From Cyanophora paradoxa CCMP329 (taxonomy: Eukaryota > Plantae > Glaucophyta), in assembly GCA_004431415.1 (NCBI GenBank), contig QPMI01000164.1, positions 1 through 64,000 on the forward strand: a DNA stretch of 64,000 nucleotides. The letters are read 5' to 3'. Made by a program: the position numbers and the translations under genes. A model generated the notes under the pieces. That model did not search any database and was not told where the DNA came from. It saw nothing but the letters and a program-made list of their open reading frames with translations. Shown in pieces: positions 16,936 to 62,900 of the stretch (position 1 is its first letter; every line of letters starts with the position of its first letter).

Positions 16936-18188
16936 GTACTTTCTGCAGAGAGCAAAGATTGGTTGACTGGCGCTTCATAGCTGCCTTGCGAGCCTGGCAT
17001 GTCACGAGCATGCGGGCAACTCGACAAAACAAGACGACGACGAAAAGAAGGTATGTTTGTGAAGAATACTCAGTCAGACAGCTTTAATCATCATACCTCT
17101 CACTGCACGTGGACCAGGGAAGAAACGACATGCCACGACGACAACAAGATCATCATTCGATCGGCGTCAACACGCAATTCGATCGTAATGACGACGTGTG
17201 TAGATGTAGAGGGTGTTGCTCAACATACAATACATTTAGTAGTACGTTGTGGTGTCGTCCCCCGATACAATGCAATACAGTTTCACTCGACATGCGCGCG
17301 GGCTGCATCAGCATTTGCTCTTGAGCGCAGCCACGGCACGTTTAGATGACTGTGAGCGCATGCGGCTCAATAGACGGGTTGGCGGACGCTTCCCACTACA
17401 GAAAGAGTGGTGCGCCAGGTCCGTAAGCAAGAAAGGCGCAGTGGCGGGTGGAAAGGCATGAACCATGCGGTTCGTATTGCTAAGCTCTGCCGCATAGGCG
17501 CTTCCCACTACAAGAGAGTGGAGGCCGTACGCGCAAGCCGAGGCAAACGATGGCGTGCTTGTCTAGGGGTTCGGGCAAGAGCGCAGCGTTCGTCCCCAGG
17601 CATACGAGCTAAAAAGTCGAAGCCCAACGCAGCAGCCCCCATGCGCTGAGCGGGATGCGCTAAGCAGTTGGCTAGGCCCAGAGGCGCCCCAAGCAGAGAG
17701 GGACAGGCCCGTACGGCACCGTAGGGCGGCGGCAAGCGGGTGCCATTACGTACACAGCAGGCGCAGAGCCAGCGTAAGACAGAGAGAACAAGAGAACAAG
17801 GACGTCGACAGACAGCAAGCGAGCGCCGCGCAGGGCAAGCGAGGGCCCAGGGCTAAAATAAGCGGGCCAGTTGGCAACAACGTGGCACCAGGAATAGCAG
17901 GCTACAAAGGGTACAAGGCAAGGCAAGCTGCCGGCTTAGAGCCGACGACCAGGGCTAGCTGGGAGTCGGAAAGTGGGCGGCACATGTGACATCTATTCTT
18001 TCGCCGCATCAGTTCTATTTTCCAAATCCCTATTAATTTTATTTTAATAGAGTTCCCTGTCCGGTTTGACACATATTCGACATAGTTAGCGCATTTTTTA
18101 CTATGGCGCCACAGAGATTTTTCTTCACATAGATAGGGCGTAACTCTGTAGCTAACATGTATGTTAAAAGGGGGGGTTTCTCCTAGTG

Positions 18189-22766: not shown

Positions 22767-22816
<50 letters not shown>

Positions 22817-28154: not shown

Positions 28155-28187
<33 letters not shown>

Positions 28188-39400: not shown

Positions 39401-41713
39401 TTCCAGCTTCAATCTGGCTAGGAATATTACCAAACAGCAGGTCGAAGTTAAAATAAACAGCAAGGGAAGCTTCGAAGCGCGCGCGTACTGCGAACCTTAG
39501 CGAAATCGAGGGCATCGCCGATGAAGTCTAGCATGGACTGCCCCGAGAAGCAGATTCCGCTGGCGAGCTCGCGTTGGTCCTCCGTCAGCGGCCGCGACTC
39601 GAGGAGGAGCTGAGTTCCCGCGATGAGGCCGTGCAGCGGCGTGCGGAGCTCTGCACGCTGCCGTCAGAAGCACAAATCAAGCGCAGCAAATGGCGAGAAT
39701 ATGAGAGGCGAGCGCGCCGTGGGATGTGTAGGAGACCCAGGAGGATTTCGCCTGGCTCGCCGCCTCGGCCCTCCCCGCCTTCTCGTTCGCGTCGATCAGC
39801 GCCGCCCGGGCCGCGGCCTGCGCCGCCTCCGCCACGCGAGGGGCGGTCACGTCCTGCGCGGAGGCGTCCGATCGCGAGCGATCGTGAGCTCGGCTGATAG
39901 CCGAGGCCAATTGCAGAAGCCTTCGGGTATACGCGCACCCGCACGAGCCCGAGCCAGTTGGTGATCTTCCCGGTGGAGGGGCAGCGGACGGGCTGGAGGT
40001 GCACGTTCGCCACCCACGGCGTCCCGTCCCTCCTCCGCGCGGCAAACTCGAGCTCCTCGCTGCAGCAGAGTCAGAGAAAATCGCCTTGATCTAAAAATGG
40101 ATTGTATGTATACATATACATGTGCCGCGCGCGCACCATCGCCCAGCGGTCAAAGCAGCGACCAGGTCTGAGTGCGTCTTGCTCCCGGCCTGGACGCAGC
40201 CCAGGATGGGGCACAGCATCCCAACGACCTGACGAAGGCAACCGTAATTAGCAAGGCATGGCAGCCGCAAGTGCAGTACCTCGTGGAAACGGAATCCGGT
40301 CAGGCGTTCGTAGCTCGCATTCCTGATCGTGATTATAAGATCCAGAATTCGAAGCGCAGCGCTCGCGATCAGGGAGCTCGAGACCCTCGCTCACCCGTAG
40401 ATGAGCTTGTTGCCCTCCTCGTTCGCAATAGCCACGCCTTCGTGCGTCGAATCGAGGGCGCTGCAGGCGTGATCATGATCACAGTTACACCCAAAGTATA
40501 TCAATATTAATATTGCACACCTGAGGACTGTGCGCGGAACGTCTCCGGATCCCCGCCAGAGTGCGGATTCGCGAGAGCGATCTCGCCGAGCCCACCGAAG
40601 CGCTGCGGGGGTCTGGTTTACTCGTGCGAGAAACAAACAGCAGAGTTATTGAAAAACAAGCTTAAGATTTTTACCTTCAGCGTTGCTGATCTGTGCTTGC
40701 GCGATGGGAGTTCCGGGTGTGGTGTGAGCGATCAATTATAATATATAGCTGCAGCTGCAGCTGCAGGACGTTAACGAGCAGGCGGACCGCGCTGGCGGCG
40801 GCCCGGATGAACACCCGAGCAGAGGCGTCGAAACACGAACTCGCGCTCCGGACGCCCTCCGCGGAGACACGGATCGTCGCGCTTTTACTGAAACGATTTG
40901 CTTCGTGTTAGAAAACAAAGGATCAACAGAATCTAGAGTACATTCGACACAGTATTTGATTTTAGCGCACCCGTTGCAGACCGCCGAGGCTGTCAACGAA
41001 TGGAGGACAGTTAACGTTGCCGTCGACGTCGGTGTCGCAGGCGAGCTGGCTCGCGATATCGATGGACGCATATGCGGTCGGATCGTGATTGGCCCTCCGC
41101 AGAAGCAAAGGGGGTGCGGTCCGCCGCCGGTCTTGCGGCTGTGTACCACGTCGCTGCTCCAGCTCCGATTGCCCGTCGTCGACGCGTCCTCCAGATGGAC
41201 GGTGACGCGGACACCGGGAGAGGCGCGCGGCCCTCCGAAGGCAGCCTCAACCAGGGCGCCGTACAGGGACGGCTCGGCAGCCGAGTCCGTTGACAGCGCC
41301 AGGTTGTATTCGAAGTCACAATCCGCGAAAGCCTTGCAATTGGCTCCGCAGGCGTGCGCATGCACACGTCCGACTGTACATGTGCATGTGTCTTTCGCGG
41401 CCGGCGAATTCGAAGCAGCCGGACTGGCGGGCCCGCGGCCGCTGCCGCTGCCTTGACCGGCTCCGAGAGCGTGGAGTCGGCCCAGGACCGCCATCCGCAC
41501 CGCAGCAACGTCCTCGCATCCGCGGTCGTCGCAATTGCAAGGGTTGCGCGGGGCGCCGTCCGTACGCGTGGCACCGCCGCCGTTCTCTTGCTGTAGTTGC
41601 GACGGATCGATATCGCGAGCCTTCGGCTTCCACGCGCGCTCGCCCCCCACGGGCACGGCGGCGCCCGCGATGGACTCCGCGAGTGCCTCAAAGGTGAGAT
41701 GGTCGACCTCCAT
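36420..41713 (-). CDS. Hybrid histidine kinase (PAS/PAC-HisKA-HATPase-linker-REC)
   Basis: PAC-like RRRDGTPWVANVHLQPV..ITNWLGLV; H-box AKSSWVSYTSH|ELRTPLHG; N-box GDETKLRQVLNNFTSNAL|KFT; G1 FEVEDTGCGI; G2 GTGL|GLCIAKAIVEAMHG; receiver ILVADDHP..VVLLDINM|PRMGG..VVAITA..GFLLKP. Joining the 40736-41713 ORF as the N-terminus is inferred. Confidence 0.88.
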
Positions 41714-41870
41714 CGCGCCGTCCGCACGCTCTCGCTTTTCACTGAGAGTCAGGCATGCGCGCAGCTGCGTTTTCTGAAGTTCGATATCGATATCGATGCT
41801 CGTTTGGTTAATGCGGACATGTACTACGGTACTATACTATGATATACGTACGTATATGTATGCCGTTCTA

Positions 41871-43797
41871 AATTACCGTACGTGGCTGCGCGGGGCGGTA
41901 ATTCTAGGGGGTAATTTTAATTTGTTTTGTTTTTGGTTAATTACAGTCTCTAGCTATAGACACCAGCACTGCGCATGCGGGGGCTGCCCAGCTGCGGCTG
42001 CACTGCAAGCCTTGAAGGTGCACAGCCGCGGCCGCACATGCATGTACAGGCCCCAGGGGCAAAGTAATATTACCTGGATATAATTATAAAATAGTAACTT
42101 GTAAGCTCCGGACGGTCCGGGCCGTACTACGGTATACGTACTTAATCATTGAATGTTTGCTCCGAGCCTCCGAGGCGCGGCGCTCATATTCGAAACGTGC
42201 CCCTTCGACCCCCTTGTGGTAACACTGGTAAGACAGTGTAGGCTGTGTAGCCTAGTATATATAGTCTGCAGTGACTCTGCACTGACTCTGCACTGACTCT
42301 GCACTGACTCTGTAATTTTTTTGGGTTGCTGTAGCGTGTGGACTCCGGGAGCTTATCATGATCGAGCAATATAATATTGATTGAATCCGCAATATTAATG
42401 CCATACTAGCTATAGGCTATAGCTACAGGTTAGCCAAAAACTACGGTAGCTAGAACATCTTCGTGCTGACTCAGTGACGTCGACGGCGCTGGCGCCGCGG
42501 CGGTCGTCACGACGTGATCACCGGGTACTACGGTATGCTGATTATGATAATGATGATTCCGCGTGCGCCCGGCCCTTAAGCTTTAGAAAGACGTCGACAG
42601 TTCAACTTCAAAGACTCCCTTTAAATTTGGTTTCTCAGACTTACTAAGCTACTCCGAGCCTCGGAGCCTTCGACTCTACAATGAGAGTCTACATCTCCAA
42701 TATTACCTGGATATAATTATAAAATAGTAACTTGTAAGCTCCGGACGGTCCGGGCCGTACTACGGTATACGTACTTAATCATTGAATGTTTGCTCCGAGC
42801 CTCCGAGGCGCTCATATTCGAAACGTGCCCCTTCGACCCCCTTGTGGTAACACTGGTAAGACAGTGTAGGCTGTGTAGCCTAGTAGTCTCAGAGTCTGCA
42901 GTGACTCTGCACTGACTCTGCAGTGACTCTGCACTGACTCAGTGACTCTGTAATTACCGTACGTGGCCGGCTGCGCGGGGCGGTAATTCTAGGGGGTAAT
43001 TTTAATTTGTTTTGTTTTTGGTTAATTACAGTCTCTAGCTATAGACACCAGCACTGCGCATGCGGGGGCTGCCCAGCTGCGGCTGCACTGCAAGCCTTGA
43101 AGGTGCACAGCCGCGGCCGCACATATGCATGCATGTACAGGCCCCAGGGGCAAAGTAATATTACCTGGATATAATTATAAAATAGTAACTTGTAAGCTCC
43201 GGACGGTCCGGGCCGTACTACGGTATACGTACTTAATCATTGAATGTTTGCTCCGAGCCTCCGAGGCGCGGCGCTCATATTCGAAACGTGCCCCTTCGAC
43301 CCCCTTGTGGTAACACTGGTAAGACAGTATAGCACTGTGTAGGCTGTGTAGCCTACTAGGCTAGTATATATAGTCTGCAGTGACTCTGCACTGACTCTGC
43401 ACTGACTCTGCACTGACTCTGTAATTTTTTTGGGTGGCTCAGCGGCTGTAGCGTGTGGACTCCGGGAGCTTATCATGATCGAGCAATATAATATTGATTG
43501 AATCCGCAATATTAATGCCATACTAGCTATAGGCTATAGCTACAGGTTCAACGGTTAGCCAAAAACTACGGTAGCTAGAACATCTTCGTGCTGACGTCGA
43601 CGGCGCTGGCGCCGCGGCGGTCGTCACGACGTGATCACCGGGTACTACGGTATGCTGATTATGATAATGATGATTCCGCGTGCGCCCTTAAGCTTTAGAA
43701 AGACGTCGACAGTTCAACTTCAAAGACTCCCTTTAAATTTGGTTTCTCAGACTTACTAAGCTACTCCGAGCCTCGGAGCCTTCGACTCTACATCTCC
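41871..43797. repeat. Young local segmental duplication with structure ABC-B-ABC (41871-42698, 42699-42955, 42952-43797)
   Basis: Two near-identical ~830-bp copies plus a ~255-bp partial middle copy. AATT microhomology at the B/ABC junction. Internal 11-mer ACTGACTCTGC repeats. Confidence 0.95.
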
Positions 43798-45590
43798 GAG
43801 GGGGGTCGCGAATCATTGACCGCCATCCAATGATCAGTTGCAATTGCAATTACGTGATTGCAATCCACTTGAATCCAGGCCCGCCGCCTGCGGCCGCTGG
43901 CCGGCGCGCGCCCGCGCGCGCTATAGGCTATAGCTAGCGCTGCTTGGATAAATTTTAGTGTGTTTATCGAAAATTGTATAAACACAGGGATTGTTCCTAC
44001 GAACTATATATCGGAAACGGATTGCGCGTGCGCGCACAGGTGCGCATGCCAGCGCTAGCTGCTGCCGCAGTGCCAGCCTGCCACTAGCTGCCTGCCACTG
44101 GCTGCCAGGGCTCAGCGGCGCCGGCTGAGCTGCAGCCTCAGGGCCGCCGGGCCTGCAGCATGCAGAGAGTCCGTCACGTGCACGCGGCGGTCACGAACGT
44201 ACGATAAGGTACGAAATACCGTAGTAAACGGGAATCTTAATTAGCTTAGGCCCAAGCCTTGAAGTAGGCCTAGGGGAACCGTACCGTTAACGTTGAACAT
44301 GAACGTCTACTAAGTATCATAGTATATACCGGTACTAGATCTACGCACGTGCACTGTTCACGTTCAACGGTTACGCACGAATTCTATATATAACTTTCAA
44401 GTTTAGTGTAACTTAGTAAGCACAAGATGATACTGTAAACGTATACGTAGGAAAGTTCGTCGAGACTTAATTTCGACAAAACCCGAGTATCAAATATTCG
44501 TCAAAGCGAGGGTCTGACAGATAGACGAAATAAAGACGCTGTCGAAGATTTCTACGTTTACAGTATTCTGGCCAGTGGTCCAGACCGTCCAGTGAATCAC
44601 ACAGATTCACACTGACCGTCGGACACTGTAGTACTGTACGACGTGTGTACGTATACATGTCTGTGACTTCCGGCCCAAGTTCCGGGTACGTATATCCCCG
44701 TTTCGAGCACGCGCGGCGCCACGTGCATGCGCACGCGTAGGCTGCGTAGCCGAGCGCATGCGCTGATGATGCGCATATTGCGACGGTGACGCGCTAGCGC
44801 TCCGGGACCCGGCTTTCAAAGTTTGCCAGCCTGGCCCAGTGGCAGTCCCGAGTCCGCGGACTGTGCGCCGCACTGCGGCAGCCTGCGCCGGCCCTGCGGC
44901 CCTGCGCAATGCGCATGCGCGCGCGATCATCGGATCGAGGTTTTTTCCGGATATATCACCCTTGAAATGTTTGTTCCGAAGTTCCGAGAACTTCGAATTC
45001 GAAATTCCGACGGTTCCTGCGAAAGGGTCCCAGGATTGTACTATCTTGTAGTATCATTGTATACGTAGGGGCAATCGACTCTGATTCTCTGAAGCGGGAG
45101 TCTGAGAGGCCCAGACTGAGGGACGCACGTTTGTATTACCATTGTTCAAGTGTCGAGCCATTGTTCAAGTGTTGAGCCATTGTTCAAGTGTTGAGACTCT
45201 CGAACTCGAGAGCCTGATGACTCAGTGATGCCATGATGAGGGACGTCGACGCAACTTCACGCCGTGACAGTGCACGTGACGCAAGTTTTATAATTACGAT
45301 CGACAAATCCTAGGCCTGCAGAGGAGTGACAGCTGCAGGACACAGGATTGTTCCGAACCGCGAGCGACTAGTACGTCGCGTCGTCGACTACTACCCGGTA
45401 GTAAGCCTTGCAATTGAAGCTTGCGGGCATTGCGGCCCAACTTGGCAACTGTCGGTCCGACGGTCATTCACGAATCATTTGGCCATGAATTCGACAGGGG
45501 AACAACTGGCTGCCAAGTTCTGGCAAGTTGTGCCAAGTTGGCAACTTGGCAACCGAGTCCGAAGTTCTCCGAACTTCGGAAGTTACTCCG
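43670..45590 (+). repeat. Dispersed repeat family, copy A (old, heavily expanded by micro-insertions)
   Basis: Collinear anchors shared with 50670-53550: TGATTC.GCGTGCGCCC, GTCGCGAATCATT, AGGGATTGTTCCT.CGAACT, TATATCCCCGTTTCGAGC, TGCGAAAGGGTCCC, CCATTGTTC.AGTGTTGAG, GTCCGACGGTCAT, GAAGTTCTCCGAAC. Confidence 0.75.
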
Positions 45591-45687
45591 AACTAGTACT
45601 TCAAGACTCCGGAGCAGTGATGGCGTCATGACCGGACTCCCCCTGGAGGTTGCAGCCGTCGCAGCGGTGGGTCGCGTCTTCAAGGCT

Positions 45688-46122
45688 TCAAGGAGGCGGG
45701 GCCCAGGCGCAGGACCAGGCGGGGCCACGGAGCGAGCTGCGTGACGGCGGCGCGCCAGGCTGCGGCAGGAGGGAGCGCGCCTCGGCGTCGAGGGCCTCGG
45801 CGTCGGCGTCGGCGTCGGCTGCCTCGCCGACCAGCGCGGCGAACCGCTCCTGGACGGCGCGCTGCTCGGAGCGGACGGCCTCGTGCTGCGAGAGGGCCCT
45901 GTCCAGGACGCCCAAGGCGGCGCGGGCGCGCGACCCGGCCGCGGCGACGGCCGCGCGGGCGGCGGAGAGGCGGGCCTCGGCCTCCCGGAGCCGCGCGGCG
46001 GCCGCCTCGCCGCCGCGGCCCAGGAGGTGCGCCGTCCACGCACGGCGCGCCTCGAGCTCGATGGCGCGGGCGCGGACCGCGGAAGGGGAGTAGCAGGGGG
46101 CTCGAGGGGGCGACATCGACAT
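45688..46122 (-). CDS. Intronless small Ala-rich coiled-coil protein (hypothetical)
   Basis: MSMSPPRAPCYSPSAVRARAIELEARRAW...LREAEARLSAARAAV...EALDAEARSLL. GC3-rich codons; divergent from the thioredoxin-like gene. Confidence 0.5.
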   Translation of the reverse strand: MSMSPPRAPCYSPSAVRARAIELEARRAWTAHLLGRGGEAAAARLREAEARLSAARAAVAAAGSRARAALGVLDRALSQHEAVRSEQRAVQERFAALVGEAADADADAEALDAEARSLLPQPGAPPSRSSLRGPAWSCAWAPPP

Positions 46123-46167
46123 CGGTAGCGCGCGCCCCGATCGGCGGGGTTTTTTGGGGGGTGGGCG

Positions 46168-46174
46168 TATAAAA
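46168..46174 (+). promoter_or_regulatory. TATA-like element in a 65-nt divergent intergenic spacer
   Basis: TATAAAA ends 13 nt upstream of the ATG at 46188, in an otherwise GC-rich context. Confidence 0.45.
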
Positions 46175-46187
46175 GAGAAGCCCCCCG

Positions 46188-46693: not shown

Positions 46694-46725
<32 letters not shown>

Positions 46726-47125: not shown

Positions 47126-48412
47126 CAGGGTCCGCAGCGAGCCGCCCCGTGCCGCCTTGCCTTTGCGTCACTGACGCGGGCGGTTGTGTTCGAATTCATT
47201 CGGGCAGTCTGTGAGGCTCAGCGCAAGTCCTCTGGAGACGACATCGTTCTGTCAGAGCCCGCCCTGGTCTCCCTCGAGGCCTGCAGCTGCCCGCCCGCCC
47301 TCGCCCATCTATTCTTCCGAGGCTTCCCGATCTTCGGTCCTGGGAATAATATTTAATAGATGGACCCGGCTTGCGTTGTCTGGCATCCCGCTCCTGCAGC
47401 TGCATGTGCCTCTTATTTCGCTCTTGCAATTGCAGGGGAGCTGCACGGTGGAGCAATTGGACGGTCTGGAAACGAGCGGCGGCCGCTTATACTTCCGCTT
47501 GACGTCGACGTCGACGTCGGTCCTGGCCACGGCGGCGGGTGCCGATTCCGACGCTCGTCCGGGGAGCTCGAGTCGCGGCGCGAGCGCGAGGAGCCCAATG
47601 GGATCCCTCAAGCTGAAGGGCCCGATGCCGAAGGCGCCCACAGCGAAATCGCTCGCAGCGGAGCTCATCGGCAGGACGCACTCTTCCCGCTCCCTCGCCC
47701 CCGCCGCGGCGCCCGCGGATCCGGCCGCTGAGTGCCCCTGTTCGGCAACCCGCGCCGCGGCCGCCGCCACGCTGGCCCCCTTCTTGGAGACCATCCTTCC
47801 TCTGCTCCCGGGTGCACACGTTGACGGCGCCGGCGCCGGCGCGCGCCCATCATGTAGAACTCAAATTAAAGTGCGAAACTGACTCGAGCTCGTGATCGCG
47901 CGGGCAGCTTCCGGAACAAAGAGCAGCCGTGGTGGCTACGACTTTAATTACTTTCTGGACGAAATCCGCACCGTCTTCATCGTTTTCGGTAGCGATTTCA
48001 ATGCCGGATCCGCCCTCGTTTCCACTTGCGCGCGACCTGTGCTTACTGGTGCCATCCGCTCCGAAGTGTCGTTCCCGGAGCTCGACACCATCAACCGCTC
48101 GATACAGGAGGGGGCTCAGTGGCATGCGACACGCTTCGCACAGGTCCGTCATTTTCGAATCAGATATTGCGCGAACAGTGCACGTGCCACATATACATGT
48201 GCTCTGCAACCTTCATTTGATTACGAGCTCCGGATCCGGTCTAGGTCACTCGTGCTGTGTATCAGATCGCCAAGGAGCTGGATGGAGACGTCAACAAGGT
48301 TTTCCTTGTGAAGCTTTTTTAATTTGCAGCTCTAGCTTTATTTCTTGTCATGGCCATTCTATCCCACTCGGTTGTTTTCCCTTCTGAACGCTTGTTCCGC
48401 ACATTTCGAATT
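47126..48412 (+). pseudogene. Intron-containing duplicate of an internal 1.27-kb piece (55442-56709) of the cyclase gene
   Basis: Near-identical to 55442-56709, with matching ORF translations in the track. About 6 substitutions and 4 insertions by eye. Lacks the gene start and end. Confidence 0.95.
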
Positions 48413-48633: not shown

Positions 48634-49434
48634 TTAGATTTGATTTTGAAAAACGGTCGCACAGTACATGGCGCGGGCGCTCCAGCCGTTGGGTATACGT
48701 ACCTGGCCATGGAGGGGGATTTCCAGGCCTAGGGCTGCAATGGGCACGAGGAAAGCATGCGCAGCGGCCGCGGGCGCCGTCTCCGCGTCGGCAGCGCGCT
48801 TCACGGAGGGCGAGGGCATAGAGGAGCGCCGCTCCAGGTTGCGCTTGGCGAGGCTCACGCGCAGCTCGCGATCGCCCGCCGAGGCCGGCGCCTGCAGCTG
48901 GAGGTCGGCACCGATGGCCATGGACTTGCGCCGGCGCGCCGCGCCTGCATGCTGTGCGGTGCCCTGCTGTGATCGATATCCCGCGCCTGTCAGCATCGAT
49001 ATATATCGGCGTCCCCCGCGCACGGCGGCATTCGACACGAAGTCAAAGCAACTCACGTTAATGTTCCCAAACGTTAGCTTGCAATTGCTGGCAAAGTTGG
49101 CCGACTGCGCGTACGCGTGCACCGTTGGGTCTGCCGATCGCGAGTCGCGTATACGTACGCGCACTGGCGACGGCTCGAGCTCGAGCTCGGACCGGGGGCT
49201 CAGAGGCGGAGATGGCGTTTCGCTGCAGCCATACGCGTGTGCCGCAGTGTTCAGCGCGTTGAGCAGCCGCGCCAGACGAGATGCTGTGGGTCTGCTGTGC
49301 AACGATCTGCTGAGCATGAACGGACAGTGCTTGGAATCGCTGTCGAACGCGGTGGCCATGGGCGTCTCGCAGCGGCTGTTGCTCGCGCTCGAAAACGGGG
49401 GGAGACTGTCTATATACATAAAAGTGGGCACCAT
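48634..49434 (-). CDS. Hypothetical protein or gene fragment (266-aa ORF)
   Basis: Long open frame with an ATG; no recognisable domain; possible donor CAG|GTACGT near the 3' end. Confidence 0.35.
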   Translation of the reverse strand: MVPTFMYIDSLPPFSSASNSRCETPMATAFDSDSKHCPFMLSRSLHSRPTASRLARLLNALNTAAHAYGCSETPSPPLSPRSELELEPSPVRVRIRDSRSADPTVHAYAQSANFASNCKLTFGNINVSCFDFVSNAAVRGGRRYISMLTGAGYRSQQGTAQHAGAARRRKSMAIGADLQLQAPASAGDRELRVSLAKRNLERRSSMPSPSVKRAADAETAPAAAAHAFLVPIAALGLEIPLHGQVRIPNGWSARAMYCATVFQNQI

Positions 49435-49753
49435 CTAAACCTGACGGCGCGGCCCGCGCGGGTACTACGGTAGCCGCGGCCGCAGCTGCAGCCGCAACCA
49501 AATGTCAATGTTGGAATGTTAACAATATAATGCACACCACAGGCCGCCGGGCAATTTGAAAACGTTAACGGCGGGCCGACGGGGCGCGCACGCACCAGAC
49601 TAGTACTCGGATGATTTATAGCACTGCCGCGCAAAATACAGTCAGCCTATAGCTAGTACTACGGACTTCGTATACGCCGGCAGATCGATATCTACTAGGC
49701 TAGGCTAGAGCGCGGTTTCCGACTCGCGCTCGCGGAGCCGTCTGCTGTCCCTG

Positions 49754-50103
49754 GGCCGTTTCCCGCAGTCGCCGATTTGTATGGGAGCGGGCTTATGTAA
49801 GGCTTACGTAGTTAAAAGATGACGGTGACATCACGTTTGGCATGATGTCATGTTAATTTCGAAGCTAATTCGTAGCTTACGCGGGAGTGACTTTGGCCGG
49901 ATTAACTCCCGCGGATGTAAGCTACGAGCTTAGGAGGGCCTTTCTTTCTAGTGAGGCAGCCAATGGGCTGCCAGTGTCGGTGGGTGCCGCTTCACTACGA
50001 TAACGGAGTGAGCGGCACCCACACGACACATCATACTTTGGCCATCATAGTTTTTTCCCCCAGCTAATTTTCACTACGTAGCTGGCGACTGCGGGAAACG
50101 GCC
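49754..50103. mobile_element. 350-bp MITE, PIF/Harbinger-like
   Basis: Perfect 20-bp TIR GGCCGTTTCCCGCAGTCGCC (49754-49773 and 50084-50103) with CTG on both flanks (3-bp CWG-type TSD). Confidence 0.88.
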
Positions 50104-51147
50104 CTGCCTACTACTAGTATTGCCTAGTACTACGGTACGGTAGTACCTGTAGGCTGTACTACGCGAGTCTAATCATAGTCTGAAGTTCGTCGAGACTTAA
50201 TTTCGAAATTAGACAAAACCTGAAAATCGTGACGAAAATATGGTTCGCCAGCATCATCATATGGGGTATTTTCGTCAACCCCTCGATTGCGCTATATATA
50301 TAGGCTATCGCTATAGGCTATCAACTACCCCGGGCCCGGAGACCGTATACTAGTACTGTACTACGGTAGTACGCGTACGCCACGGTACGCGACGACTACC
50401 CCTAGTACTACGGTACGCGACGTACGCGTACGCCGCGCGCGGGCCCGTGCCACGGTGAGAGGGCCGTGACGTCGACGGTACGAAGCGCTCGAACTTCGGA
50501 ACGGATTGCCGCAGTACCTCTTAAGAGCTCAGCAAAAAAGCCTAGCAAAAAAGACTGGATCGAGACTCTTAATTTGAGAGATCTCTGCAGAATCTTCGGA
50601 AGTTATTTTCGTGAACCCCTTTAATTTCCACACACAAGCTCTGTTCAAAAGACTCGAAAAGAGTCAAATGCATGATTCTGCGTGCGCCCCTTTTCTTTCT
50701 TAGACTTACGTTACAAATTACTTCGGAGTCCGGGCCGGGCCCCGGGCCTAGTCTTCGTCGACTCTTCGTCGACGTCGACGTGCGTCGACTCTTCGACTCT
50801 TGACGGGAGTCGCGAATCATTCTAAATGCCGCGAATTATAGGACTTACTTATTTTAAGACTAGGAAGAATCATTGAACTTCATCCAAGTCTTTGCCAGCT
50901 ATACTATGATAGCTATTATATAATTAGCTACTAGGCTAGCCGCTGAGCGGCCTGAGCCTATAGCTACCTGGTAGTAGCTATAGCCTATAGCCTATAGGCT
51001 GGTACCGGTAGTACTGGTACCTGAAGACGGCGGTAGCGCGAATGCAATGGAGCCTTTATGGAGGCGCAGCCGCGCCGGCCTGCCACTGGGCCAGCCCGAA
51101 AAGTGGATAAACAGAGGGATTGTTCCTGCGAACTTTCGGAAACGGAT

Positions 51148-51385
51148 ACTGTAGGAATTTTCGAATGCTTTTTTAGCCGATGTTTTAAATTGCCGTATAT
51201 TGCCGAGAGGCCGGATTCGGCAATTGTAAGCCACGGCAATTCTGAGGGGGTAGGCCTAAACGGCAGTTTTGTATGGCGCCATAGAGCGGAAATCTGGATT
51301 CGGCAATTTATCGCCACGGCAATTTCGGTTTTAATTGGTCGAATTCGGCAATTTAACTACGCGGCAATTTAAGCATTCCTACAGT
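51148..51385. mobile_element. 238-bp MITE with TIR ACTGTAGGAAT(GCTTAAATTGCCG) and internal CGGCAATT repeats
   Basis: ACTGTAGGAAT (51148) and ATTCCTACAGT (ending 51385). The empty site CGGATTGC in copy A (~44018) and at ~50502 implies an AT duplication, or a TSD-less insertion with TA ends. Multiple CGGCAATT motifs in both orientations. Confidence 0.8.
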
Positions 51386-51593
51386 ATTGCAGTCGAATTT
51401 GCAGAGGTGCCAGAGAGTCGACGTCCGTCCGACGGTCACACGGCGGTCACGTACGAAACTTGAAAGGGGATTCTTAGGGGAACGTCTACGTATATTACGG
51501 TATATACCGTAGTACGCACGTGCACCGGTACCGGTACCGTTCAAGGTTAACCATATATAAATACGCACGAATTTATGAGCACAAGAAGATATT

Positions 51594-52345
51594 GGTGACG
51601 TTCCGGATCCTCGTGTGTACCCTTCTCTCTCTTCTACTTCGCTATTTTTGCCTCTCCCGCCTGGTTCAGCCCCATCGTCTGCCTTCCCTGTCACTACTGG
51701 CTTGCGTTTCGCCCCTCCTCTTATACTGCCGATTCCGAGTCTGAATCCGAGTTCTGCCCCTTTCCTCGTGTCGTCCCTATAGCTAGTTCCTCAGATTAGT
51801 CTTCAGCCGGCGCCGGGCGCCGTCCATTGTTTTACGTATACCAACTCTACAACCTCGATTCCGTTTAGACACTCCGCCAGCTTCGACTCTCCCCTCTAGT
51901 ACTAGTGGTGTCCTACGTTTCGCCTCTCCTACTGTTCTGCCGCCTCGGCCTCCTGCGACTACGCCGACGTATATGTTCTAGCTAGTTCTGCTGTTAGCTC
52001 TATCTTGTCGTCTTCGTCTAGATCTTCGTCTTCGACTGTAGTTCCTCGTGCTCGTTCTCCTTTATTCGCTGCGTCCCCGTATACGTACGCTATACGCGTG
52101 CTCCTCGTCGTTCTAGTGTGACTAGTACTTCTGCGTCGACGTCCTTGAGCTCTTCTAATCCTTCTCCTCATGATCATTCTCGTTCTCCTTATCTTTTGCG
52201 TTCTTCTGATCGTGTCCCTTCTCGTGACCCCTCCTGATTCTGTATTTTGTGCTAGTTTACTGTATCTTTGATTTGTGATTGCTTTGTTGTCCTTAATATC
52301 ACTACCTACGGGGGGTTCGCCCCACTCTAGTCTCTCAAAACAAAA
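51594..52345 (+). mobile_element. Possible retroposed or other insertion, pyrimidine-skewed, with an A-rich tail
   Basis: Flanked by AAGATATT (51586-51593 and 52346-52353), ends in CAAAACAAAAA, and is absent from repeat copy A. Class unknown. Confidence 0.35.
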
Positions 52346-53946
52346 AAGATATTCTGGATCGGCCGCGGGTAAGTATATCCCCGTTTCGAGCGCGTGCGCG
52401 GCGCCACGTGGCACGCGTGCATGCGCATTAAAAAAATATTGCGCACTCGAAGGAGTCGCAGCAGTGCTGCGATGCTGACGTATTATCACGTATATACGTA
52501 CTACGGTACAGTACGTACTACGTATACGCGTGCTCCGAATTAAAAACATTTTCGAAGCCTCCGTCGGCGGCACCGATGATACTACTGCAACGCTTTAATT
52601 TCGAAAAATTGTATCATAGTTGTTTTAGCTTTGGACTCCGAGCTCTCGAGGATCCTCGACCGAAGCTTAAGTTCATCGCGATCGAACTCGCAATCGATTG
52701 GCGAAACGAGCTCTCTCGAGCTTATAAATTAAAATTTTTAAAAACTTAGGCTAGGCCTAGCCTAGCTCCCAGGCTCCTAGGCAGGCCGGGCTGCGCGCGC
52801 GAGCGATTGTTTTTCAGCTTTCAAGCTTTGTAGGGTCCCGTTTGCGAAAGGGTCCCGGCCCCCGGGATTGTATGATCATTGTAGAGCCGGGCAATCGATA
52901 TCGAATCTAGATCTGACGATCGCGAGGCGACGCCCACAAGGGAAGCACGTGCACGTTTGTAATAACTTTGTATTACCGGTACTAGTACCATTGTTCCAGT
53001 GTTGAGAGAGCCTGCTGAGGGACTCGATATCATCTAGTATCGCGATCGACATGTCACGGTGTACAGTATACGTATACCGTGCAACAGGAAAATACTAGCT
53101 AGCTGGACGCTGAAAATTAGTGGAGCCGGAAATTTGTAGCCGCGACTGTGCAGTCTGTGACTCTGTGCGCTACATGTACAGAGCGAAAATCGGGCCTCGG
53201 GCCTCGGCATTTTAACGATTCCGGTTTAAAATTCGGCGAATTCGGCAATTTGAGTTTTACGCCTCCTAACGTTAACGGTAGAGGGATCGGAGATTCGGAA
53301 TCGATACCAGTATCATCTGATGCGCGACGCAGCGCGACTCTGCTCAGCGGCTGCGCGAGCCGTGCAATGCAGAACCACGCGTGCATGCGCATGAACGGCA
53401 AGGTCCGGCACTGCGGCATTGGTCCGGCAGTACTAGTGGTCCGTCCGACGGTCATGCACGCGTACGAATATGCACGGTCATGCAAGGGAAACCGTTGAAC
53501 AACTTGGCAACTGGCAACTTCCGAAGTTCCGAGTCGGAAGTTCTCCGAACCAGCGCGTTTGGGAAACGGGGAGGCCCTGAGGCTCCGGAAAGGCCGAAGG
53601 GGAAATTGGAGCTCGTCTCGGCGAGCACACGCTCCGACGGTCGAACGCGGGCTCATGATGCCTCGGCTGCAGCCTGCAGGTGGTCACATGTACGTAGGTT
53701 TTACGCAGTGATCGACATCATACGGGATGGCGACTGGTGTTGGAGCTGACTCAGTACTAGTGAGCATGCGCAGCGCCAGTTTCTCAGAGATCCAGACCGT
53801 TATGCGTACAATACACGTTCAGCGCTAACTATAGCCTGCTGCAGCTGGCAGCTTTCTTGGCTTGCTTTCTTGGCTTGATGATCATCGCTGATCGGATCAC
53901 CAATTGCGACGTCGCAATATAATTAGTTAGCAGCTCACGACTGACC

Positions 53947-56900
53947 ATGAGCTCGATCAGATCTAGACGTGGTTTGTACCTGCTGGGCGCTCCTGCGCTC
54001 GAGCGCATGCATATGCATGGAGATCTAGATGAGGATCACGTGTACGATTTTGAACGAGAAGAGCTGCCCTCCGGCGATTCAACGAGGCCGGAGACTACGG
54101 TCGCAGGGGAGCCCGTTGCGCCCAGCGCGGAGCCTGCGGCCGTGGCGCCGCATGCGCAGCCGTCCGATCGCGACAGCTGCAGCTGCAGCGAGCTCGATCT
54201 CGAGGCGCCATATGCTTCGACAGAAGCGGCGGCCGCGTCGAGCGGCGGCGCTGGCGCCGGGAGCGGTTCTTATACGGATGTTCACATGCAGCCTGGCCAT
54301 AAAGAAGCAGCTGCAGCTGGCCCGGCGGTGCCGGTTGAGCGCCTATTCCCGTACATCGCGGTGGATGTGCTCGCTCTGGGCGCCGTCAGGGCTCAGCTGG
54401 CCATGGCCACGGGACCCCTTCGCGGCGGTCCGGAAGGCGACGCCGCCGTCGCCTCCGTACCGGGTGCCGCCCTCTTTGTGGACGGTGCGCCGCGGCCCGG
54501 CCTTGGCCATGGCCTGCAGATCCTTGCAAATCGGCTGATCATGATCGAGCGCGGGCGGCCGGGCCTCACGATCGCGAAGTGAGCGGCTTTTCGGCGCTCG
54601 CGCGGAGCCTCGCGCGCTCGAGCTCGGGCGCCGCGGGCGGCGCTGTTGCGTGCGAGAAGGTGCATGGGCTCGCCCTAGGCTAGGCCCCCGCCTCTTCAAG
54701 GCCGTGACAGTGAGACTGACGTCCGCCCCGCCCCAACCCCCGACTTGGCGATCCCATCCCCATTCGAATCCAGCTCGTATCCACACGTGCGCCGCCGCTG
54801 AAATCCCTTTCCGACCCCTGCCCTCCAAAGCCTCCCCCCCCCTCCCGTGCTAACTCCGCCAGCGCCCGCCGGCACCACTTCGAATCTCATTTTCTTGAAC
54901 GCCGGGCGCCTCGCCCGGGCGCAGTGAACGGGTACTTCTCGCTGCTCGTGAGCGCCCTGCACGGCAGAAGCCTCGAGGTCCTCTTCTTCGCGGGGGCACG
55001 TGCACGCTCCGCGGCCGCCCCCGGCCCCCCTCACGATCCCCTCACGATCCGCGGGCGCAGGACGCCATCGTGGCGTTCGCGCCGGCGACCGAGGGGCGCT
55101 CCATGCAGCAGGCCGCCTCCTCCGCCCTCGCCGCTGCCCTGGAGGGTACGGACGTTGACGTCGCGGTGCTTTCGAAGCACTCCCGGCCCGAGGCGCTGAA
55201 CTGTGTGCTCGTCACAGTTCGGGCCATTTCCTTCGAGAAGCAGGGGATCAGGCTCCAGGCGCACACGGGGCTCGGTTCGACGCCGCGTGCACCGCGCGAG
55301 CGCTAGCCCCCGCGATCGCCCGAAATGACTGGCGCGCACCGGCGCCCTCGTGCAGGGGTTGGCGATCTGCTCGTGTACTTCCTGCGCGGCACGGGCCAGC
55401 GCGCGTGGAGCCAGTTGCTCTACGCCGGCGACCTGATGAGCCAGGGTCCGCAGCGAGCCGCCCCGTGCCGCCTTGCCTTCGCGTCACTGATCATGACGCG
55501 GGCGGTTGTGTTCGAATTCATTCGGGCAGTCTGTGAGGCTCAGCGCAAGTCCTCTGGAGACGACATCGTTCTGTCAGAGCCCGCCCTGGTCTCCCTCGAG
55601 GCCTGCAGCTGCCCGCCCGCCCTCGCCCATCTATTCGAATTCTTCCGAGGCTTCCCGATCTTCGGTCCTGGGAATAATATTTAATAGATGGACCCGGCTT
55701 GCGTTGTCTGGCATCACGCTCCTGCAGCTGCATGTGCCTCTTATTTCGCTCTTGCAATTGCAGGGGAGCTGCACGGTGGAGCAATTGGACGGTCTGGAAA
55801 CGAGCGGCGGCCGCTTATACTTCCGCTTGACGTCGACGTCGACGTCGGTCCTGGCCACGGCGGCGGGTGCCGATTCCGACGCTCGTCCGGGGAGCTCGAG
55901 TCGCGGCGCGAGCGCGAGGAGCCCAATGGGATCCCTCAAGCTGAAGGGCCCGATGCCGAAGGCGCCCACAGCGAAATCGCTCGCAGCGGAGCTCATCGGC
56001 AGGACGCACTCTTCCCGCTCCCTCGCCCCCGCCGCGGCGCCCGCGGATCCGGCCGCTGAGTGCCCCTGTTCGGCAACCCGCGCCGCGGCCGCCGCCACGC
56101 TGGCCCCCTTCTTGGAGACCATCCTTCCTCTGCTCCCGGGTGCACACGTTGACGGCGCCGGCGCCGGCGCGCGCCCATCATGTAGAACTCAAATTAAAGT
56201 GCGAAACTGACTCGAGCTCGTGATCGCGCGGGCAGCTTCCGGAACAAAGAGCAGCCGTGGTGGCTACGACTTTAATTACTTTCTGGACGAAATCCGCACC
56301 GTCTTCATCGTTTTCGGTAGCGATTTCAATGCCGGATCCGCCCTCGTTTCCACTTGCGCGCGACCTGTGCTTACTGGTGCCATCCGCTCCGAAGTGTCGT
56401 TCCCGGAGCTCGACACCATCAACCGCTCGATACAGGAGGGGGCTCAGTGGCATGCGACACGCTTCGCACAGGTCCGTCATTTTCGAATCAGATATTGCGC
56501 GAACAGTGCACGTGCCACATATACATGTGCTCTGCAACCTTCATTTGATTACGAGCTCCGGTCTAGGTCACTCGTGCTGTGTATCAGATCGCCAAGGAGC
56601 TGGATGGAGACGTCAACAAGGTTTTCCTGGTGAAGCTTTTTAATTTGCAGCCATTGTATTCCACTCGGTTGTTTTCCCTTCTGAACGCTTGTTCCGCACA
56701 TTTCAAATTGATTCGCCAACCCCATCGCGAAGGACGATAAGGTGCACGCCAGCTTTTGCAGGCCGCAGCGCAACGCGCGATCGAGGCCATCGCTCGCGAT
56801 CGCGATCGAGTGCGTTCGCAGCTGCTGATTGGTATACGCTCGCTTTCCAGGGCGCGTCGGCGCTCCTGTCGTTCGGGAACCCGGGTCGGAGCCACGAGGA

Positions 56901-59900
56901 CGACGCGGAGCGGGCCGTGCGTGCGGCGATGGCGCTGGCCGACTGGTTTGCGGCCAGCGGCTCGCCCTTCGCGGCCGGCATCGCGGGCGGCCCCACCTTC
57001 TGCGGAACGCTCGGCTCCTCGTGCCGAAAAGAACACGCACTTGTCAGCTGTAGCATCGTTGCTTCCGGCGATATCTCCCCGCGCGCTGCTGATCATGAAT
57101 GGTTTCCTGTGTGCGCAGATTGGCGACTCGGTCATTCTCGCAGCTCGCCTGATGGGCGCGGCCCGAGCGAACATCGGCTTCGGCAGCGGCAACGCCCCGG
57201 TGCAGTGGCCCCCGCCATCCCTTCATAGGAAAGGGTCTATCTGTGAAACAGCGTCGCGCTCCCGGCGGCGGCGCAGCTGCTCTGTGAGGTGCTGTGCGAC
57301 TCGTTCGTTGCGGCGAGCATCTCCGCAAGCCGCCGCCCGCTCGTGCGCACCCGCATATGCATTGGTTGCATCCCATCGGAGATCTAGAGTTCCTCGAAGG
57401 CTGATCACGCCGCGCGCTCAAGGGTTTCCGGCTCGACGGGCTGCCCCCGATCCGAGCCAAGGGCTTCAGCGAGCCGGTCTCCGTGTTCCGCCCGCAGGCG
57501 CGTTGGATTCGAAGCCTGCTTCATACATATTTAATTATAAATATAGTAATTAAACCAAAAGACTCGTTCGCCCGCGCTCATCGTGCGCGCCCGATTGAAG
57601 GCGGTGGAGGACGCCCCGAAAGACTTCGACGACTCTCAGAGGCGGCTGGCGCTGCGCCTGCCGAGGCCCACCGTGGCCTCATTTGCCAGCGACGGCGGCG
57701 GCGCCAGCGCCGGCGGCGCTGCCGGTGCCCGGCTATCGGGATCATCCCACTCGGAGCCGGCGTTCCGGCGCTCTCGCTTCCTGGGGCGTCACCCGGCTCC
57801 GATCTTTGGTCGGTGCGCAAGCTGTATGTATATCGTGTAGTTCACCGCGTCGCGCGGCTACGTATACGTGATGGCAGGCGCACGTGCACGTCCGCCATGC
57901 GCTCCATCAAAGTGACTTTCGTTTGCACAGCGACGCCGCGCTCGAGCGCTGCATCAACGAGGTCCGGGCCTGCTCGGCGGGCGGGCAGGGGGGCACCATT
58001 TGCATCGAGGGGGACGCGGGGTTCGGCAAGACCCGCCTTCTGCGCGAGGTGCGGCGTGTCTCGGCTGCGCCGGTCGCTCGCACACGCATGCCGATCGCGA
58101 CTTTGAGCGCTGCTCTCGCTGTAGGTCGCGGCATCGATCGAACCGGAGCGATTCGTCGTGCTGCGTGGCGCGACGGCAGCGACCGAGGTGCCACCCGCTC
58201 TCGAGAAGACGCATGCATATGAATGTGCACACGAACAGGAAACCAACGGATAGATATATATCGCGCGCAGGAAATCACGCCGCTCTACGTGTTTCGCGGG
58301 GTTCTGGTTTCTATCCTCGAGGCACAGGGCGCCGTTGCCCCGAGCGGCGGGCTCGCGAACTCGCGGGAGAGCTGGATTCCCCCCGCGGGGACCGCGCAGG
58401 CCAGCTGGGCGGCAGAGCTGGAACTTCCTACCCTTTGGAACGCCATCTTCGGGGGGGGCAGCGGCGGCATGAGATCGGGCAGGGGAGGTGCGCATGCGTT
58501 CCACCCGAACATCGCTCGAGCGGCATATGTCCGATGGTCGACGTCTGCGTCTGCAGGTCGCGATCGCGATCGCGGTGTGGACCGGAAGAGCTCGTACCAG
58601 AGCAGCTACCAGCCACTCAACGCACAGCTGCTCATCCGTGCGGCCAACACGCTGGCCCGGTCCGCCATCAAGCTCCCCGAAAATGTTAATGTCCGCGCTT
58701 CAAGGCTTCGGTCCCGTCACTCGCCGCCTCCGCCATGCCAGGCTTATCGTCTCGCTGGAGAACGCCAACCATGATCATGAACAGGGCGAACACCGCCGGC
58801 AGGTCGCCCTCATCATCGAGGTGGGAGCCAGCAAGGGCGGCCTTGATCATGAAGCTATTCTTTCTATCGGCTCGTTACTCGTATTTCACGGCAGGACGCG
58901 CACTGGATGGACAGCTCGTCGTGGAAGACCCTTCGCTCGCTGCGGGAGGCCTGCCCCCGACTCCTGGTGCCTGCCCCCTGCGGTCGCGCGTGTTTCTGCC
59001 TCTGTCTCGCCCCTGCCATTCAACTAGACCGTGATTACCACGCCTGCCCACACGGCTCCTTCGATTAGATCGTGATTACCACGCGACCCATCCCACAACC
59101 GCCCGTCGAGTTCCTGAAACTGCAGGGCCAGGTTCATTGATTTCCGCTAGCGCTGCCGGGCGTCCAGCCCACATGCATTGGCCCGCATCTGAAGTCCGGT
59201 CTGTTGCCCAGACGGGCGAAGCGCGATCGCGATCGCTTGCAGGTGGCCACCGGGCTCCCCAAGAGAGCGACCGCGAACCAGCTGCACCAAGCACACCGCT
59301 CTCTCGCCTGAGGGGACTCTACTCGCTCGGATATATGTACAACGCGTTCGGCAGCATGAGGAGGCCGCGGCGACCAGATCTAGAAGCCAACTCTGGAGAT
59401 TCCGAGTGCGCTTGCTATCGATCGCGATCGCTGCGCGCGCTCATTTTCGAGCGCCTGCTTGTGCCGTATTACCACGTGCACCAGGGATCCGGAGCCGGTT
59501 TCGGGGGTGGAGGTTGATGATCATGAACGGGACGGTCGGGTGCGCCCGGCTGCAGCTGGCCGCCGCATTACCAAAAGAGAATTGTTCTCGACAGGCCTCG
59601 CAGGCGTCGCACGACGTCGCGGGGGACGAGGGCGCCCAGCCACGGGCCGATGGCCCGTCTGCGCTGGCGGCGGTGAGCCCGAAGACCCGCCGGCCCGTTC
59701 ACATCCAACTGGGCCCCCTTGCCTGCGACGACGCGCGCATGCTCCTCCTGGTGCCCGAGCGCGCTTGAAATTGTGCAACACATCGAATGTGACAGCTGAT
59801 CATGCATATGGCGCGCCGTGAACCTAGAGCCTCTCCACCCGAATGAACATCTCCTGGCCCGCGGACTTCGTCGAGTCGGTGCTCGAGAAGGCGTCGGGGG

Positions 59901-62900
59901 TGCGGGATCGCCGGGGGCTGCATATGAAAGCGATCTTCGATGTCTGCGCGACTAATCAGAGGCGCCTCGAATGCAGGTTCCGCTGTTCCTCGTCGAGCTG
60001 TGCCGCCAGCAATTGGTGGGCTCTTCGTCGCTCGTATACTAAGCTTACTGCAGATTTAACATTCGGCCTCGCAAACTCAAAATTAATATTGGATGATGCT
60101 TATCAACTGCACGTACTTCAGGCAGCCACAGACACTGAGCTCGAGGCTTTGAACAAGAAATCGGCTATTCCGGAATCGGTGCGACCGAAACCGGATATCG
60201 CAAGGACCCACTTTTCGCTCACACGTGCACATGTACACGCGCACTCTGCAGCTTCAGCAGGTCGTGTTGCAGCACACCGACGGGCTTCCGCCTCAAGCAC
60301 AGGCGCATGCACACTTAAGCTTCTCGTGTAAGCTGTCGAAATTGCCGTTGTGTAACTTGCATCACGGACAGGCCGTGCTCAAGCTGGCATCGATCGCTGG
60401 CTCCGAGTTTACAGCGAGCATCTTGCACGCCATCGATCCTTCAGGTTTGCATTTTGCATCCCATATATGCATCGAGCCCCGGTCGCAATTCAGGTGCGCT
60501 AATGCGCTCGCACACGCAGGAATGAGCGTAAACGCGCTTCACTTCGCGATCCGCCTCCTGTGGCGGGACAACCTCATTGCGGTTTTCAGCGCCAAACCCG
60601 GAGCGCTTTTACAACGCGCGCTGAACGCAGTTGTCGCAGGTGGCGGGCAGCGCGAGCGGGCACCCGCCGCTGGTGGAAGAGCGCGACGCAGAGGCGGCCG
60701 CCGGCGAGCCGCCGGGCTGGCCGCCGGAAGACCTGCGCCTCGACTTCCACCACCAGCTCGTCAAGGTCCGCGTCGAATTCGAGAGTTCTCAATTGGATTC
60801 GCAGCTGCCGTCGAGCCCCTCGAGCTCGATATCGAATGCTTGCGCCCTCTTCGCAGGAAACCGTGTACTCTGCGACGGCGCACAGTCTTCGGAAGGAAGT
60901 CCACAGGCGCTACGCCGAGCACCTGGAGAAACTTGACGGGGCCACTGCGCACGCCAAGGCTGCTAGCGCCCTCGCGTGCGTGATCGAATTGCAGCAGGCG
61001 TACTGCTCAGCCGTCGTTGACAGTGCTCGTGGGAGGCTGACGCTGTCGACGTCGCGCTTTTACGCCGAATGCAGGCATCACTGGCGCTGCGCCGAGAATC
61101 TGCCGAAATCCCTCGGGCACCTCTCAAACGCGGTGCTTTGTAGATTATATACAATGCATGACATGATATGGCTGAAGGCAAGTGTTGCACAGGCGTGGCG
61201 GGCCGTGCGAACAAATGCTCTCAAAGAAGCTTCGGCGATGCTTGCGGGTGCGTATCGATATCAGCGTTGGCCATAGGCATGGTCCGAAGCGTGCCCAGCA
61301 CATGTCTGCGCCAACCCTGCGGCAGACGTCTGCGCCACGATTGACGACAGCGGCCTCGCGGGGCCCAACACGCGCCCGCTGCCGGCCGCCATGCGCATGG
61401 CGTGCTGGGGAGCGCCCGTGGGCCGCCGCACCTCCGTGCGCCGCTCCGGATCCGGATCCCAAATTAAATTAAAGTCGCTATTCACGGGGCAGCCGTTCGC
61501 TGCTGACGGGGCACGCCGCTCGCCCCGCCAGGTCTCTGCCGACGCCGACTGCGCACTCGACTCTGCGGGCTGGGCGCGGTGGCGCACGACGCGGGACCTC
61601 GCCTGCGGCGCCCTTGCCTCCATCGCCTACTACAACGGCAGAATGGACCTCAGCCACGAGCTCGCCGCGCGCTCTCTTTCGCGCCCTCTCTGCACTTCTT
61701 TCTGTCTCTTCTGAAGCCCTCGAGCTCTCAGGTGGCCGTGCTGGGGAGCCTCGGCGAGGCGGTGCCGGAGCGCAGGGCCTCCCTCTTCGGCGTGGCGCGG
61801 CTGCTCGCCCGCCTCGCGCGGCTCGGGGGGCGCGCCGCCGCCGACGCCGCCGCCGACGGCCGCGGCCTGCCGCCCTACGCCGCCGACCGCGACTGCCGCG
61901 AGGTCGCCCTCGACTGCCTCCTCCTTGTCATGTGGTGCCCACATGGCGAAGTCCGACCACATATAGCACGCACCACGTCTCTCAGAGCTTCTGCTGAAGG
62001 GCGGGAACGCAGGATCAACATGCGGAAGGGGAGGCAGGGCGGCCCGCAGCAGACGGAGGGCGGCGGGCAGCCGCAGGCGCGCGGCTTCGAGCTCGCGGCC
62101 TTCGCGATCGCCCGCTGCGTCGAGGTCTCCTGCGCGACGCCCAAGCACGTGCGCGCGAGAGCTCGCCGCCCGGCCCGGCGCTTTGCTTCGCACGGCCCCG
62201 ACCGCGCTTGCGCAGCTCCGGACCACGCAAGACGCGAGGATCTTGTCAACCTTCTCAACCTTCCTCGACAGTCCGCACCTCAAGCTGCTCCCGTCGATGC
62301 GATCGCGCGTCGCTGTTGACACTGGTCGCGATCGCCACGCGCGCCAGTTGTCGGCATGTCGAAGGCAGCCCGAGGGGTCCTTCAGCGTGCGCGGGAGCAC
62401 GCCGTCGCGGTCGGCGACGACACGGTACGCTGCTCTAGACACGGTCGATGTCGAACCGAGTCGCCGAGCTGGCGCAGAGCCGCGCCTTCGTGGCGTCGCA
62501 CACGGCGATGCAGGCGTGCCGCCACGGCCGCTTCCTCGAGGGCTGCGCCGAGTTCGAGGTCGTATTCTCGTGCGCGCGAGCTTGATTGCGATCACGGACG
62601 CCTCGCGATCGGACTTGCCGCAGCGCTCGCGTCTCGCAATCGCGATCGCTGACGCGTACGGCCTCGTCTGCAGGCTCGAGGGAGCGAACCCGCGCATCAA
62701 GCTGGACGCCGGCGTGATCTACGCCCTCACTTTCGTTCTACAGGCGCGCACTGCCCGGTCGTGTTTTGGCCGTCGACCTCGCAGCAAGCGCGATCCGACT
62801 TCGCTGCCGTCCGCATGCGCAGGGCCAGTACGCGGCGGCGCGGAAGACGTGTGCCGAGCTCGTCGGCATCTCCGAGCACCTCGGGATCGATGGCCGCGGT

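Follow-up and report, generated by a model that had tools for sequence, protein, structure and literature searches.

What process writes short palindromic strings into the DNA of the glaucophyte Cyanophora paradoxa, and does it do so faster than point mutation? The question is raised by an intergenic tandem duplication whose copies differ by insertions of the form W-C-W'-G-W and W-W'-W, in which W is a trinucleotide and W' its inverted copy. A preliminary description of the locus, made by eye, had interpreted them as the footprints of departed transposons and as the dominant mutation type. We refer to these insertions as scars, of an 8-bp and a 6-bp class according to the letters that they add to a single W. 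All scar statistics come from one 64-kb window of one strain (CCMP329, contig QPMI01000164.1, positions 1 to 64,000), which is the whole stretch of DNA analysed; the features discussed are listed in Table 1.

Table 1. Features of the window, with positions counted from its first letter.
Feature	Positions	Strand	Remarks
CACTA-type right end; minus strand reads CACTAGGAGAAAC	17985..18188	-	Candidate agent family, unlinked to scars
Intergenic block saturated with both scar classes	41800..45700	.	Collapse removes 18% of letters
Copy 1 of young intergenic tandem duplication	41871..42698	.
5-bp indel GCG-CG-GCG	42175..42182	.	Copies 1 and 3, not middle copy
8-bp scar W-C-W'-G-W, W=TGA	42467..42477	.	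Copy 1 only
5-bp indel GCC-CG-GCC	42567..42574	.	Copy 1
13-bp complex insertion, flank duplicated and inverted	42675..42687	.	Copy 1
Partial middle copy	42699..42951	.	Matches 42066-42313
8-bp scar, W=TCT	42887..42897	.	Middle copy only; neither full copy has it
8-bp scar, W=TGA	42935..42945	.	Middle copy only
Copy 3 of duplication	42952..43797	.
4-bp indel GGC-C-GGC	42965..42971	.	Copy 3
6-bp scar W-W'-W, W=CAT	43122..43130	.	Copy 3
10-bp complex insertion including inverted 5-bp flank copy	43327..43336	.	Copy 3 only
8-bp scar, W=CTA	43353..43363	.	Copy 3 only; not in copy 1 or middle copy
8-bp scar, W=GCT	43437..43447	.	Copy 3; single substitution at 5' edge
8-bp scar, W=GTT	43546..43556	.	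Copy 3
Duplicated cyclase-gene fragment (second natural experiment)	47126..48412	.	6-bp scar at 48229
Old collinear paralog of 41800..45700 block, both classes	49400..53900	.	11% of letters removed
Adenylate-cyclase/ATPase gene	53947..62800	+	6-bp scars in introns; 8-bp class nearly absent
Source of the fragment, inside cyclase-ATPase gene	55442..56709	+	6-bp scars at 55488, 55634 (introns)

Scars in a young tandem duplication and in sequencing reads

Alignment of copy 1 with copy 3 reproduced the 9 indels and 1 substitution initially counted between the ~830-bp copies, the sole substitution being a T/G difference at 42327, immediately 5' of a scar. All nine motifs of the preliminary description were present, each facing a single W in another copy. 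The middle copy added a tenth polymorphic site to the list, at 42935, where it carries the 8-bp scar TGA-C-TCA-G-TGA. Across the three copies, the indels comprise six 8-bp W-C-W'-G-W and one 6-bp W-W'-W insertions, two 5-bp and one 4-bp indels, one difference in a TA run and two complex indels. A single W in one paralog corresponds to a full scar in the other at 7 sites in this duplication, and at 3 in a second pair of sequences considered below. At 42269-42312 there is a short array of an 11-bp unit with CACTG, inside which the middle copy carries a scar.

The W-CG-W and W-C-W indels had been proposed to hold terminal bases of a departed element. They are real indels, but GC-only strings, and their motifs show no enrichment at 36-64 kb where W is not GC-only. 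The 42175 indel is equally readable as a plain GGCGC tandem duplication; that at 42567 would fit an 8-bp-type left end joined via a shorter GC microhomology, and that at 42965 a 6-bp-type join via GC microhomology. Since tandem-duplication or shorter-microhomology readings fit the three GC-only examples, these strings are no evidence of element bases.

The differences were compared with Logan short-read contigs from four runs (2012, 2019, 2024), leaving out the homopolymer repeats 46684-46732 and 47020-47075. Two unique stretches rich in scars, 43763-44474 and one from 44534 to at least 45609, showed zero differences from the contigs of the four runs, and alternative alleles of paralogous copies were recovered at 42327 (8-bp), at 42567 and 42806 (5-bp) and at 47171 and 47310 (6-bp). 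A long-read consensus or assembly artefact, which the many 1-bp homopolymer differences in the assembled satellite might suggest, is almost certainly not the source of the scars, as the motifs and both alleles recur in the short-read contigs of the four runs; the same holds for deletions from pre-existing motifs, on grounds given with the motif counts below. No new scar was found among the 2012-2024 runs in 5.9 kb, a comparison of low power.

A fixed three-base unit with untemplated spacers

The preliminary description predicted an excess of x=C, y=G among 11-mers of the form W-x-W'-y-W. This combination accounts for 78 of 147 such 11-mers, against a Markov expectation of 4-6, with the remaining 15 combinations holding 1-15 each. 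Counting by class covered 36-64 kb, left out duplicates and GC-only W, and yielded 51 W-C-W'-G-W (0.6 expected, 85-fold) and 257 W-W'-W (8.3 expected, 31-fold), identifying the 6-bp class as the main class despite its one example in the duplication. An excess of 31- to 85-fold is impossible by deletion, and four motifs are confined to a single one of the three copies; thus, the scars were built by insertion.

The view that the unit is fixed at 3 bp, with W on both sides, was borne out. Enrichment occurs at k=3 only, versions with a 4- or 5-bp W are essentially absent (with a k=5 W-W'-W count of 0), the modest excess at k=2 is likely a by-product of k=3 scars, and palindrome arms extend beyond 3 bp at the chance rate (58/219 and 68/219). 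The C/G spacers are likewise not templated by the flanks, as had been claimed: flanks of the kind needed for templating occur at just 4 of 55 sites, and the spacers are strand-symmetric. W is mildly biased and may be nearly any trinucleotide, with no strict target word (32 of 32 classes in 6-bp scars, 25 in 8-bp scars); its middle base is A/T in 70% of the 8-bp class vs 50%, and the reconstructed sites are not palindromic. Palindromic sites were not hit preferentially, with 16 four-unit runs where about 14 were expected; slippage or repeated hits may explain the 11 runs of five or six units.

These features bear on short-range polymerase template switching, or fold-back synthesis at double-strand breaks, which would insert an inverted copy of the flank. 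Such synthesis produces short inverted insertions (PMC11724301) and may account for the complex indels at 43327 and 42675, but we consider it very unlikely to have written the scars. Fold-back inversions in the literature span 2 to about 150 bp and require prior inverted microhomology (PMC11724301), whereas the arm here is fixed at 3, the flanks are non-palindromic and whole blocks of the window are spared. Insertions of this origin would also vary in length with every base templated by the flank, which the fixed 3-bp arm and the untemplated C/G do not match. A literature search for this scar grammar found no description.

Distribution of scars and their weight against substitutions

We measured scar load as the share of letters removed by collapsing scars. 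By this measure, scars appear to account for 11-18% of intergenic letters (Table 1), and for 5-7% of the letters in the histidine-kinase-like gene and the cyclase gene, both large signalling genes. Collapse removes about 1%, a background level, from the gene block at 20-36 kb as well as from the young LTR element. The satellite contains 0 scars and loses nothing, although it is a weak control, because its differences are mostly 1-bp homopolymer changes resembling consensus errors, and a young 350-bp MITE within the scarred block also contains 0 scars. As these young mobile insertions (MITE, satellite, LTR element) carry few or none, scars accumulate with time. By eye, the 20000-36000 region is a GC-rich housekeeping-type block with an M1 aminopeptidase, a mitochondrial carrier and CCCCG-rich introns.

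Within the scarred region, the intergenic blocks 43560-45640 and 50440-53640 are old, collinear paralogs, each expanded independently of the other by scars and by other insertions. Collapsing scars raised the match score between the paralogous blocks from 251 to 296 bits (random deletion 0-160). Their global alignment was too gapped for event counts.

The two scar classes occupy different niches. The 6-bp to 8-bp ratio is 150:2 in the two genes against 95:51 in intergenic DNA (Fisher p 5e-16), and the 8-bp class is nearly excluded from introns (1 vs 61). A hybrid 7-bp class is present only where the 8-bp class occurs, with 20 in intergenic DNA vs 4.8; the excess of about 15 compares with 139 expected if one enzyme nicked both ends independently. 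This niche split and hybrid deficit indicate that two agents, or two coupled modes, are needed, and the initial proposal of one element making all classes was not upheld. A single transposase family might still make both, if flush or one-base-inside nicks were coupled at both ends by chromatin or by element subfamily. This would explain the unit length and join logic common to both classes and the small hybrid class found only alongside 8-bp scars, but the hybrid deficit, the near exclusion from introns and the difference in W spectra, notably at the middle base, make it rather unlikely.

Scars are purged from conserved exons. In the cyclase gene, whose exon limits were set by tblastn hits and hand-read splice sites (spliced genes being searched exon by exon), we found 1 scar in conserved exons vs 20 expected (p 3e-8), against about 10 six-bp scars per kb outside exons. 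Two low-complexity exons contain 6-bp scars in frame, and scars thereby enter proteins as in-frame dipeptides. This cyclase-ATPase gene belongs to a large C. paradoxa family of at least 10 paralogs, with 60-71% identity over one exon, and the ten best relatives of one exon are all C. paradoxa proteins in EukProt. Several introns of the gene seem to begin with GC or other non-GT letters. The hybrid histidine kinase-like gene, read by eye on the minus strand at 36400-41700, contains 60 collapsible 6-bp scars and none of 8 bp.

The claim that scars are the dominant mutation type stood in the young duplicate, but neither in a second pair nor in the long run; nor is it general in the window, where the satellite lacks scars and the gene block at 20-36 kb is at background. 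The second pair, a duplicated fragment of the cyclase gene and its source, shows 6 substitutions, of which three lie within the last 60 bp, against 3 scars and two indels of other kinds. For the long run, we counted 31 8-bp scars with one mismatch vs 10 in a simulation without substitution. A uniform-age model gives about 0.05-0.14 substitutions per base vs 0.03-0.04 scars per base, a rough estimate that imprecise repair at birth would lower on the substitution side. This suggests that, in the long run, substitutions exceed scars 2-4 fold by events, and that scars lead by letters added. The young duplicate deviates from this ratio (binomial p 0.0003-0.025), which suggests that its scars came in a recent burst or that the locus is a hot spot.

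Probable excision footprints and their candidate agents

We consider it likely that the insertions are excision footprints, left by cut-and-paste DNA transposons that duplicate 3 bp of target, and that the flank hairpins formed on excision were opened and joined via this duplicated target. The inserted element would lie between two copies of W, with little target preference. On excision, the transposase would nick the non-transferred strand, and the freed 3'-OH of the flank would attack the opposite strand, forming a hairpin on each flank as in RAG, Transib and hAT chemistry. Host repair would open each hairpin 3 nt beyond its tip, overhangs ending in W' and W would anneal, and fill-in would complete the join. 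A nick flush with the element end would yield W-W'-W (+6), and, for an element that starts with C at either end, a nick displaced inwards by one base would yield W-C-W'-G-W (+8), strand-symmetric as seen. The hairpin and microhomology geometry put forward in the preliminary description reproduces both main classes exactly. Two element families are probably involved: a flush cutter active in intergenic DNA as well as in introns and flexible exons, and a C...G element restricted to repeat DNA between genes, for which the CACTA/CMC type is the best candidate.

CACTA, named earlier as the agent, is a candidate: the window contains one CACTAG-type end, but no filled site matching a scarred paralog was found among the window paralogs or the four runs. 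The element to which this end at 18188 belongs has its other end outside the window, an exact search of this end in metagenome contigs gave 0 hits, and it is unlinked to the scars, which would preserve one C of the element per 8-bp scar end. We found no intact C...G element with TIRs and a 3-bp duplication in the window, where the TIR search hits were one G...C MITE and two AT-flanked MITEs, and recognised no transposase gene there. Both a CACTA-type end and a MITE with a 3-bp duplication are nevertheless present. The published assembly (99.94 Mb, PacBio-based, probably haploid) was described in a paper that reports little repeat expansion and does not mention transposon footprints (PMC6704402), and TEs are methylated in this genome (PMC12344493). 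Little repeat expansion and methylated TEs fit uneasily with the very many excisions needed.

Low repeat expansion (PMC6704402), the extreme uniformity and density of the scars and the lack of a filled site in the window would suit a transposon-independent enzyme that makes breaks with a 3-nt stagger, which would then be filled in, closed as hairpins (in one mode after addition of a C) and religated. This part could be played by a transposase that is domesticated or acts without an element, by a resolvase able to form hairpins or by a topoisomerase-like nuclease, although we judge this reading unlikely. Such an enzyme must combine fill-in, capping and fixed C addition, and we know of none that does. 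A transposon, by comparison, gives the duplication and the C/G for free, and elements with 3-bp duplications and of CACTA type occur in the window.

Among known systems, the elements of the hAT superfamily have an 8-bp target-site duplication. The scars resemble the footprints of Ac/Ds, interpreted under the hairpin model of Coen et al., in that palindromic P-nucleotide insertions and microhomology joins occur at the empty donor site (PMC5873905); hairpin opening, P nucleotides and microhomology joins are established there (PMC5873905; PMC4561436). Ds footprints are, however, heterogeneous, with 28 types in 128 excisions and the palindrome centred on the complement of a flank base (PMC5873905), whereas the scars have a 3-bp unit, an absent apex or a fixed C, and two dominant products. 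The apex required of a hAT footprint occurs at 4 of 55 sites, and there is no enrichment even at k=4 or 5. Flank hairpins are known for both hAT and RAG (PMC2803484), and flush-sealed hairpins in V(D)J coding joints give even palindromes, as does W-W'-W. Transib and RAG differ in their 5-bp duplications (PMC2803484) and variable coding joints, against the uniform 3 bp here; the k=5 count of 0 does not match a Transib/RAG footprint.

PIF/Harbinger elements (Tourist, mPing) share the 3-bp duplication and the use of duplication-derived microhomology at repair (PMC4561436). Their excision is mostly precise and leaves no inverted copy, and they have restricted targets and G...C ends, whereas scars take any W and imply C...G. 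The TWA/CWG targets of such elements are rare among the scars (TAA/TTA 4 of 286, CAG/CTG 23 of 286), and the products are insertions. Tc1/mariner elements leave element-end bases between target copies, and Sleeping Beauty nicks inside the element (PMC7351741), but they target TA only, with no hairpin and no inverted copy; a TA duplication around 2-3 element bases does not describe scars whose W is any trinucleotide. CACTA/En-Spm (CMC) elements have the 3-bp duplication, C...G termini and short footprints. In morning glory, reported CACTA footprints measure 3-5 bp, and Tgm9 excision can be precise, in contrast to the +6 and +8 found here, and a literature search found no report of a fixed W-C-W'-G-W product from CACTA. 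Scars thus work like the hairpin footprints of hAT and RAG but do not match hAT, Transib, Harbinger or mariner, with CACTA as a candidate.

Schwarz-Sommer and Saedler are said to have proposed in 1985 that genes acquire small insertions, some of them in frame, from visits by transposons. Excision footprints are known allele by allele, and diversity by footprints from single alleles, whereas scars occur here at about one per 50-100 bp over tens of kilobases, a uniformity and density for which our literature search found no match. The old proposal that such visits are a main source of small-scale diversity can be tested genome-wide in this cultured, probably haploid alga. The uniform grammar also reports on how the DNA is cleaved: should the 8-bp scar be the work of a CACTA/CMC transposase, the nick position is fixed for a superfamily whose biochemistry our literature search did not find described. 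Tentatively, and with rather less confidence than in an excision origin, we propose that one or two hairpin-forming 3-bp enzymes, either transposases or an element-free nuclease, write fixed 6- and 8-bp insertions in bursts faster than point mutation, supplying more noncoding letters than substitution changes and adding dipeptides to flexible protein regions, with the 8-bp product reflecting a nick, so far undescribed, that falls one base internal to the element end. In Cyanophora, failure to collapse scars biases alignments and gene models as well as indel models and repeat dating.

We additionally noted several mobile and repeated features in the window. The satellite at 1-12760 has a unit of about 480 bp in some 26-27 units, the first of which show either about 4% divergence or a poor consensus. 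A motif near 18146, in the CACTA-type end, recurs at 12764, right after the satellite, which may be cargo of the same element. Some 200 bp from the CACTA-type end lies a 3.3-kb LTR element (14708-17984) with 342-bp LTRs that differ by one 1-bp indel, a TGTG 4-bp duplication and no long pol-like ORF. The 350-bp MITE (49754-50103) is Tourist/Harbinger-like, with perfect 20-bp TIRs beginning GGCCG and a CTG 3-bp duplication. Related small TIR elements lie at 51148-51385, whose empty counterpart in the old paralog is at about 44019-44024, and at 44430-44566, of very high copy by contig depth; their ends read as ACTGTA...TACAGT between AT and AT, or as TAC...GTA without duplication. A Pfam search of eight window ORFs gave nothing informative. 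Finally, a divergent pair of small intronless ORFs at 45688-46457, parts of which are multi-copy by contig depth, consists of a coiled-coil ORF and an 89-aa thioredoxin-like ORF with a CPYY motif, which matches a C. paradoxa gene model.
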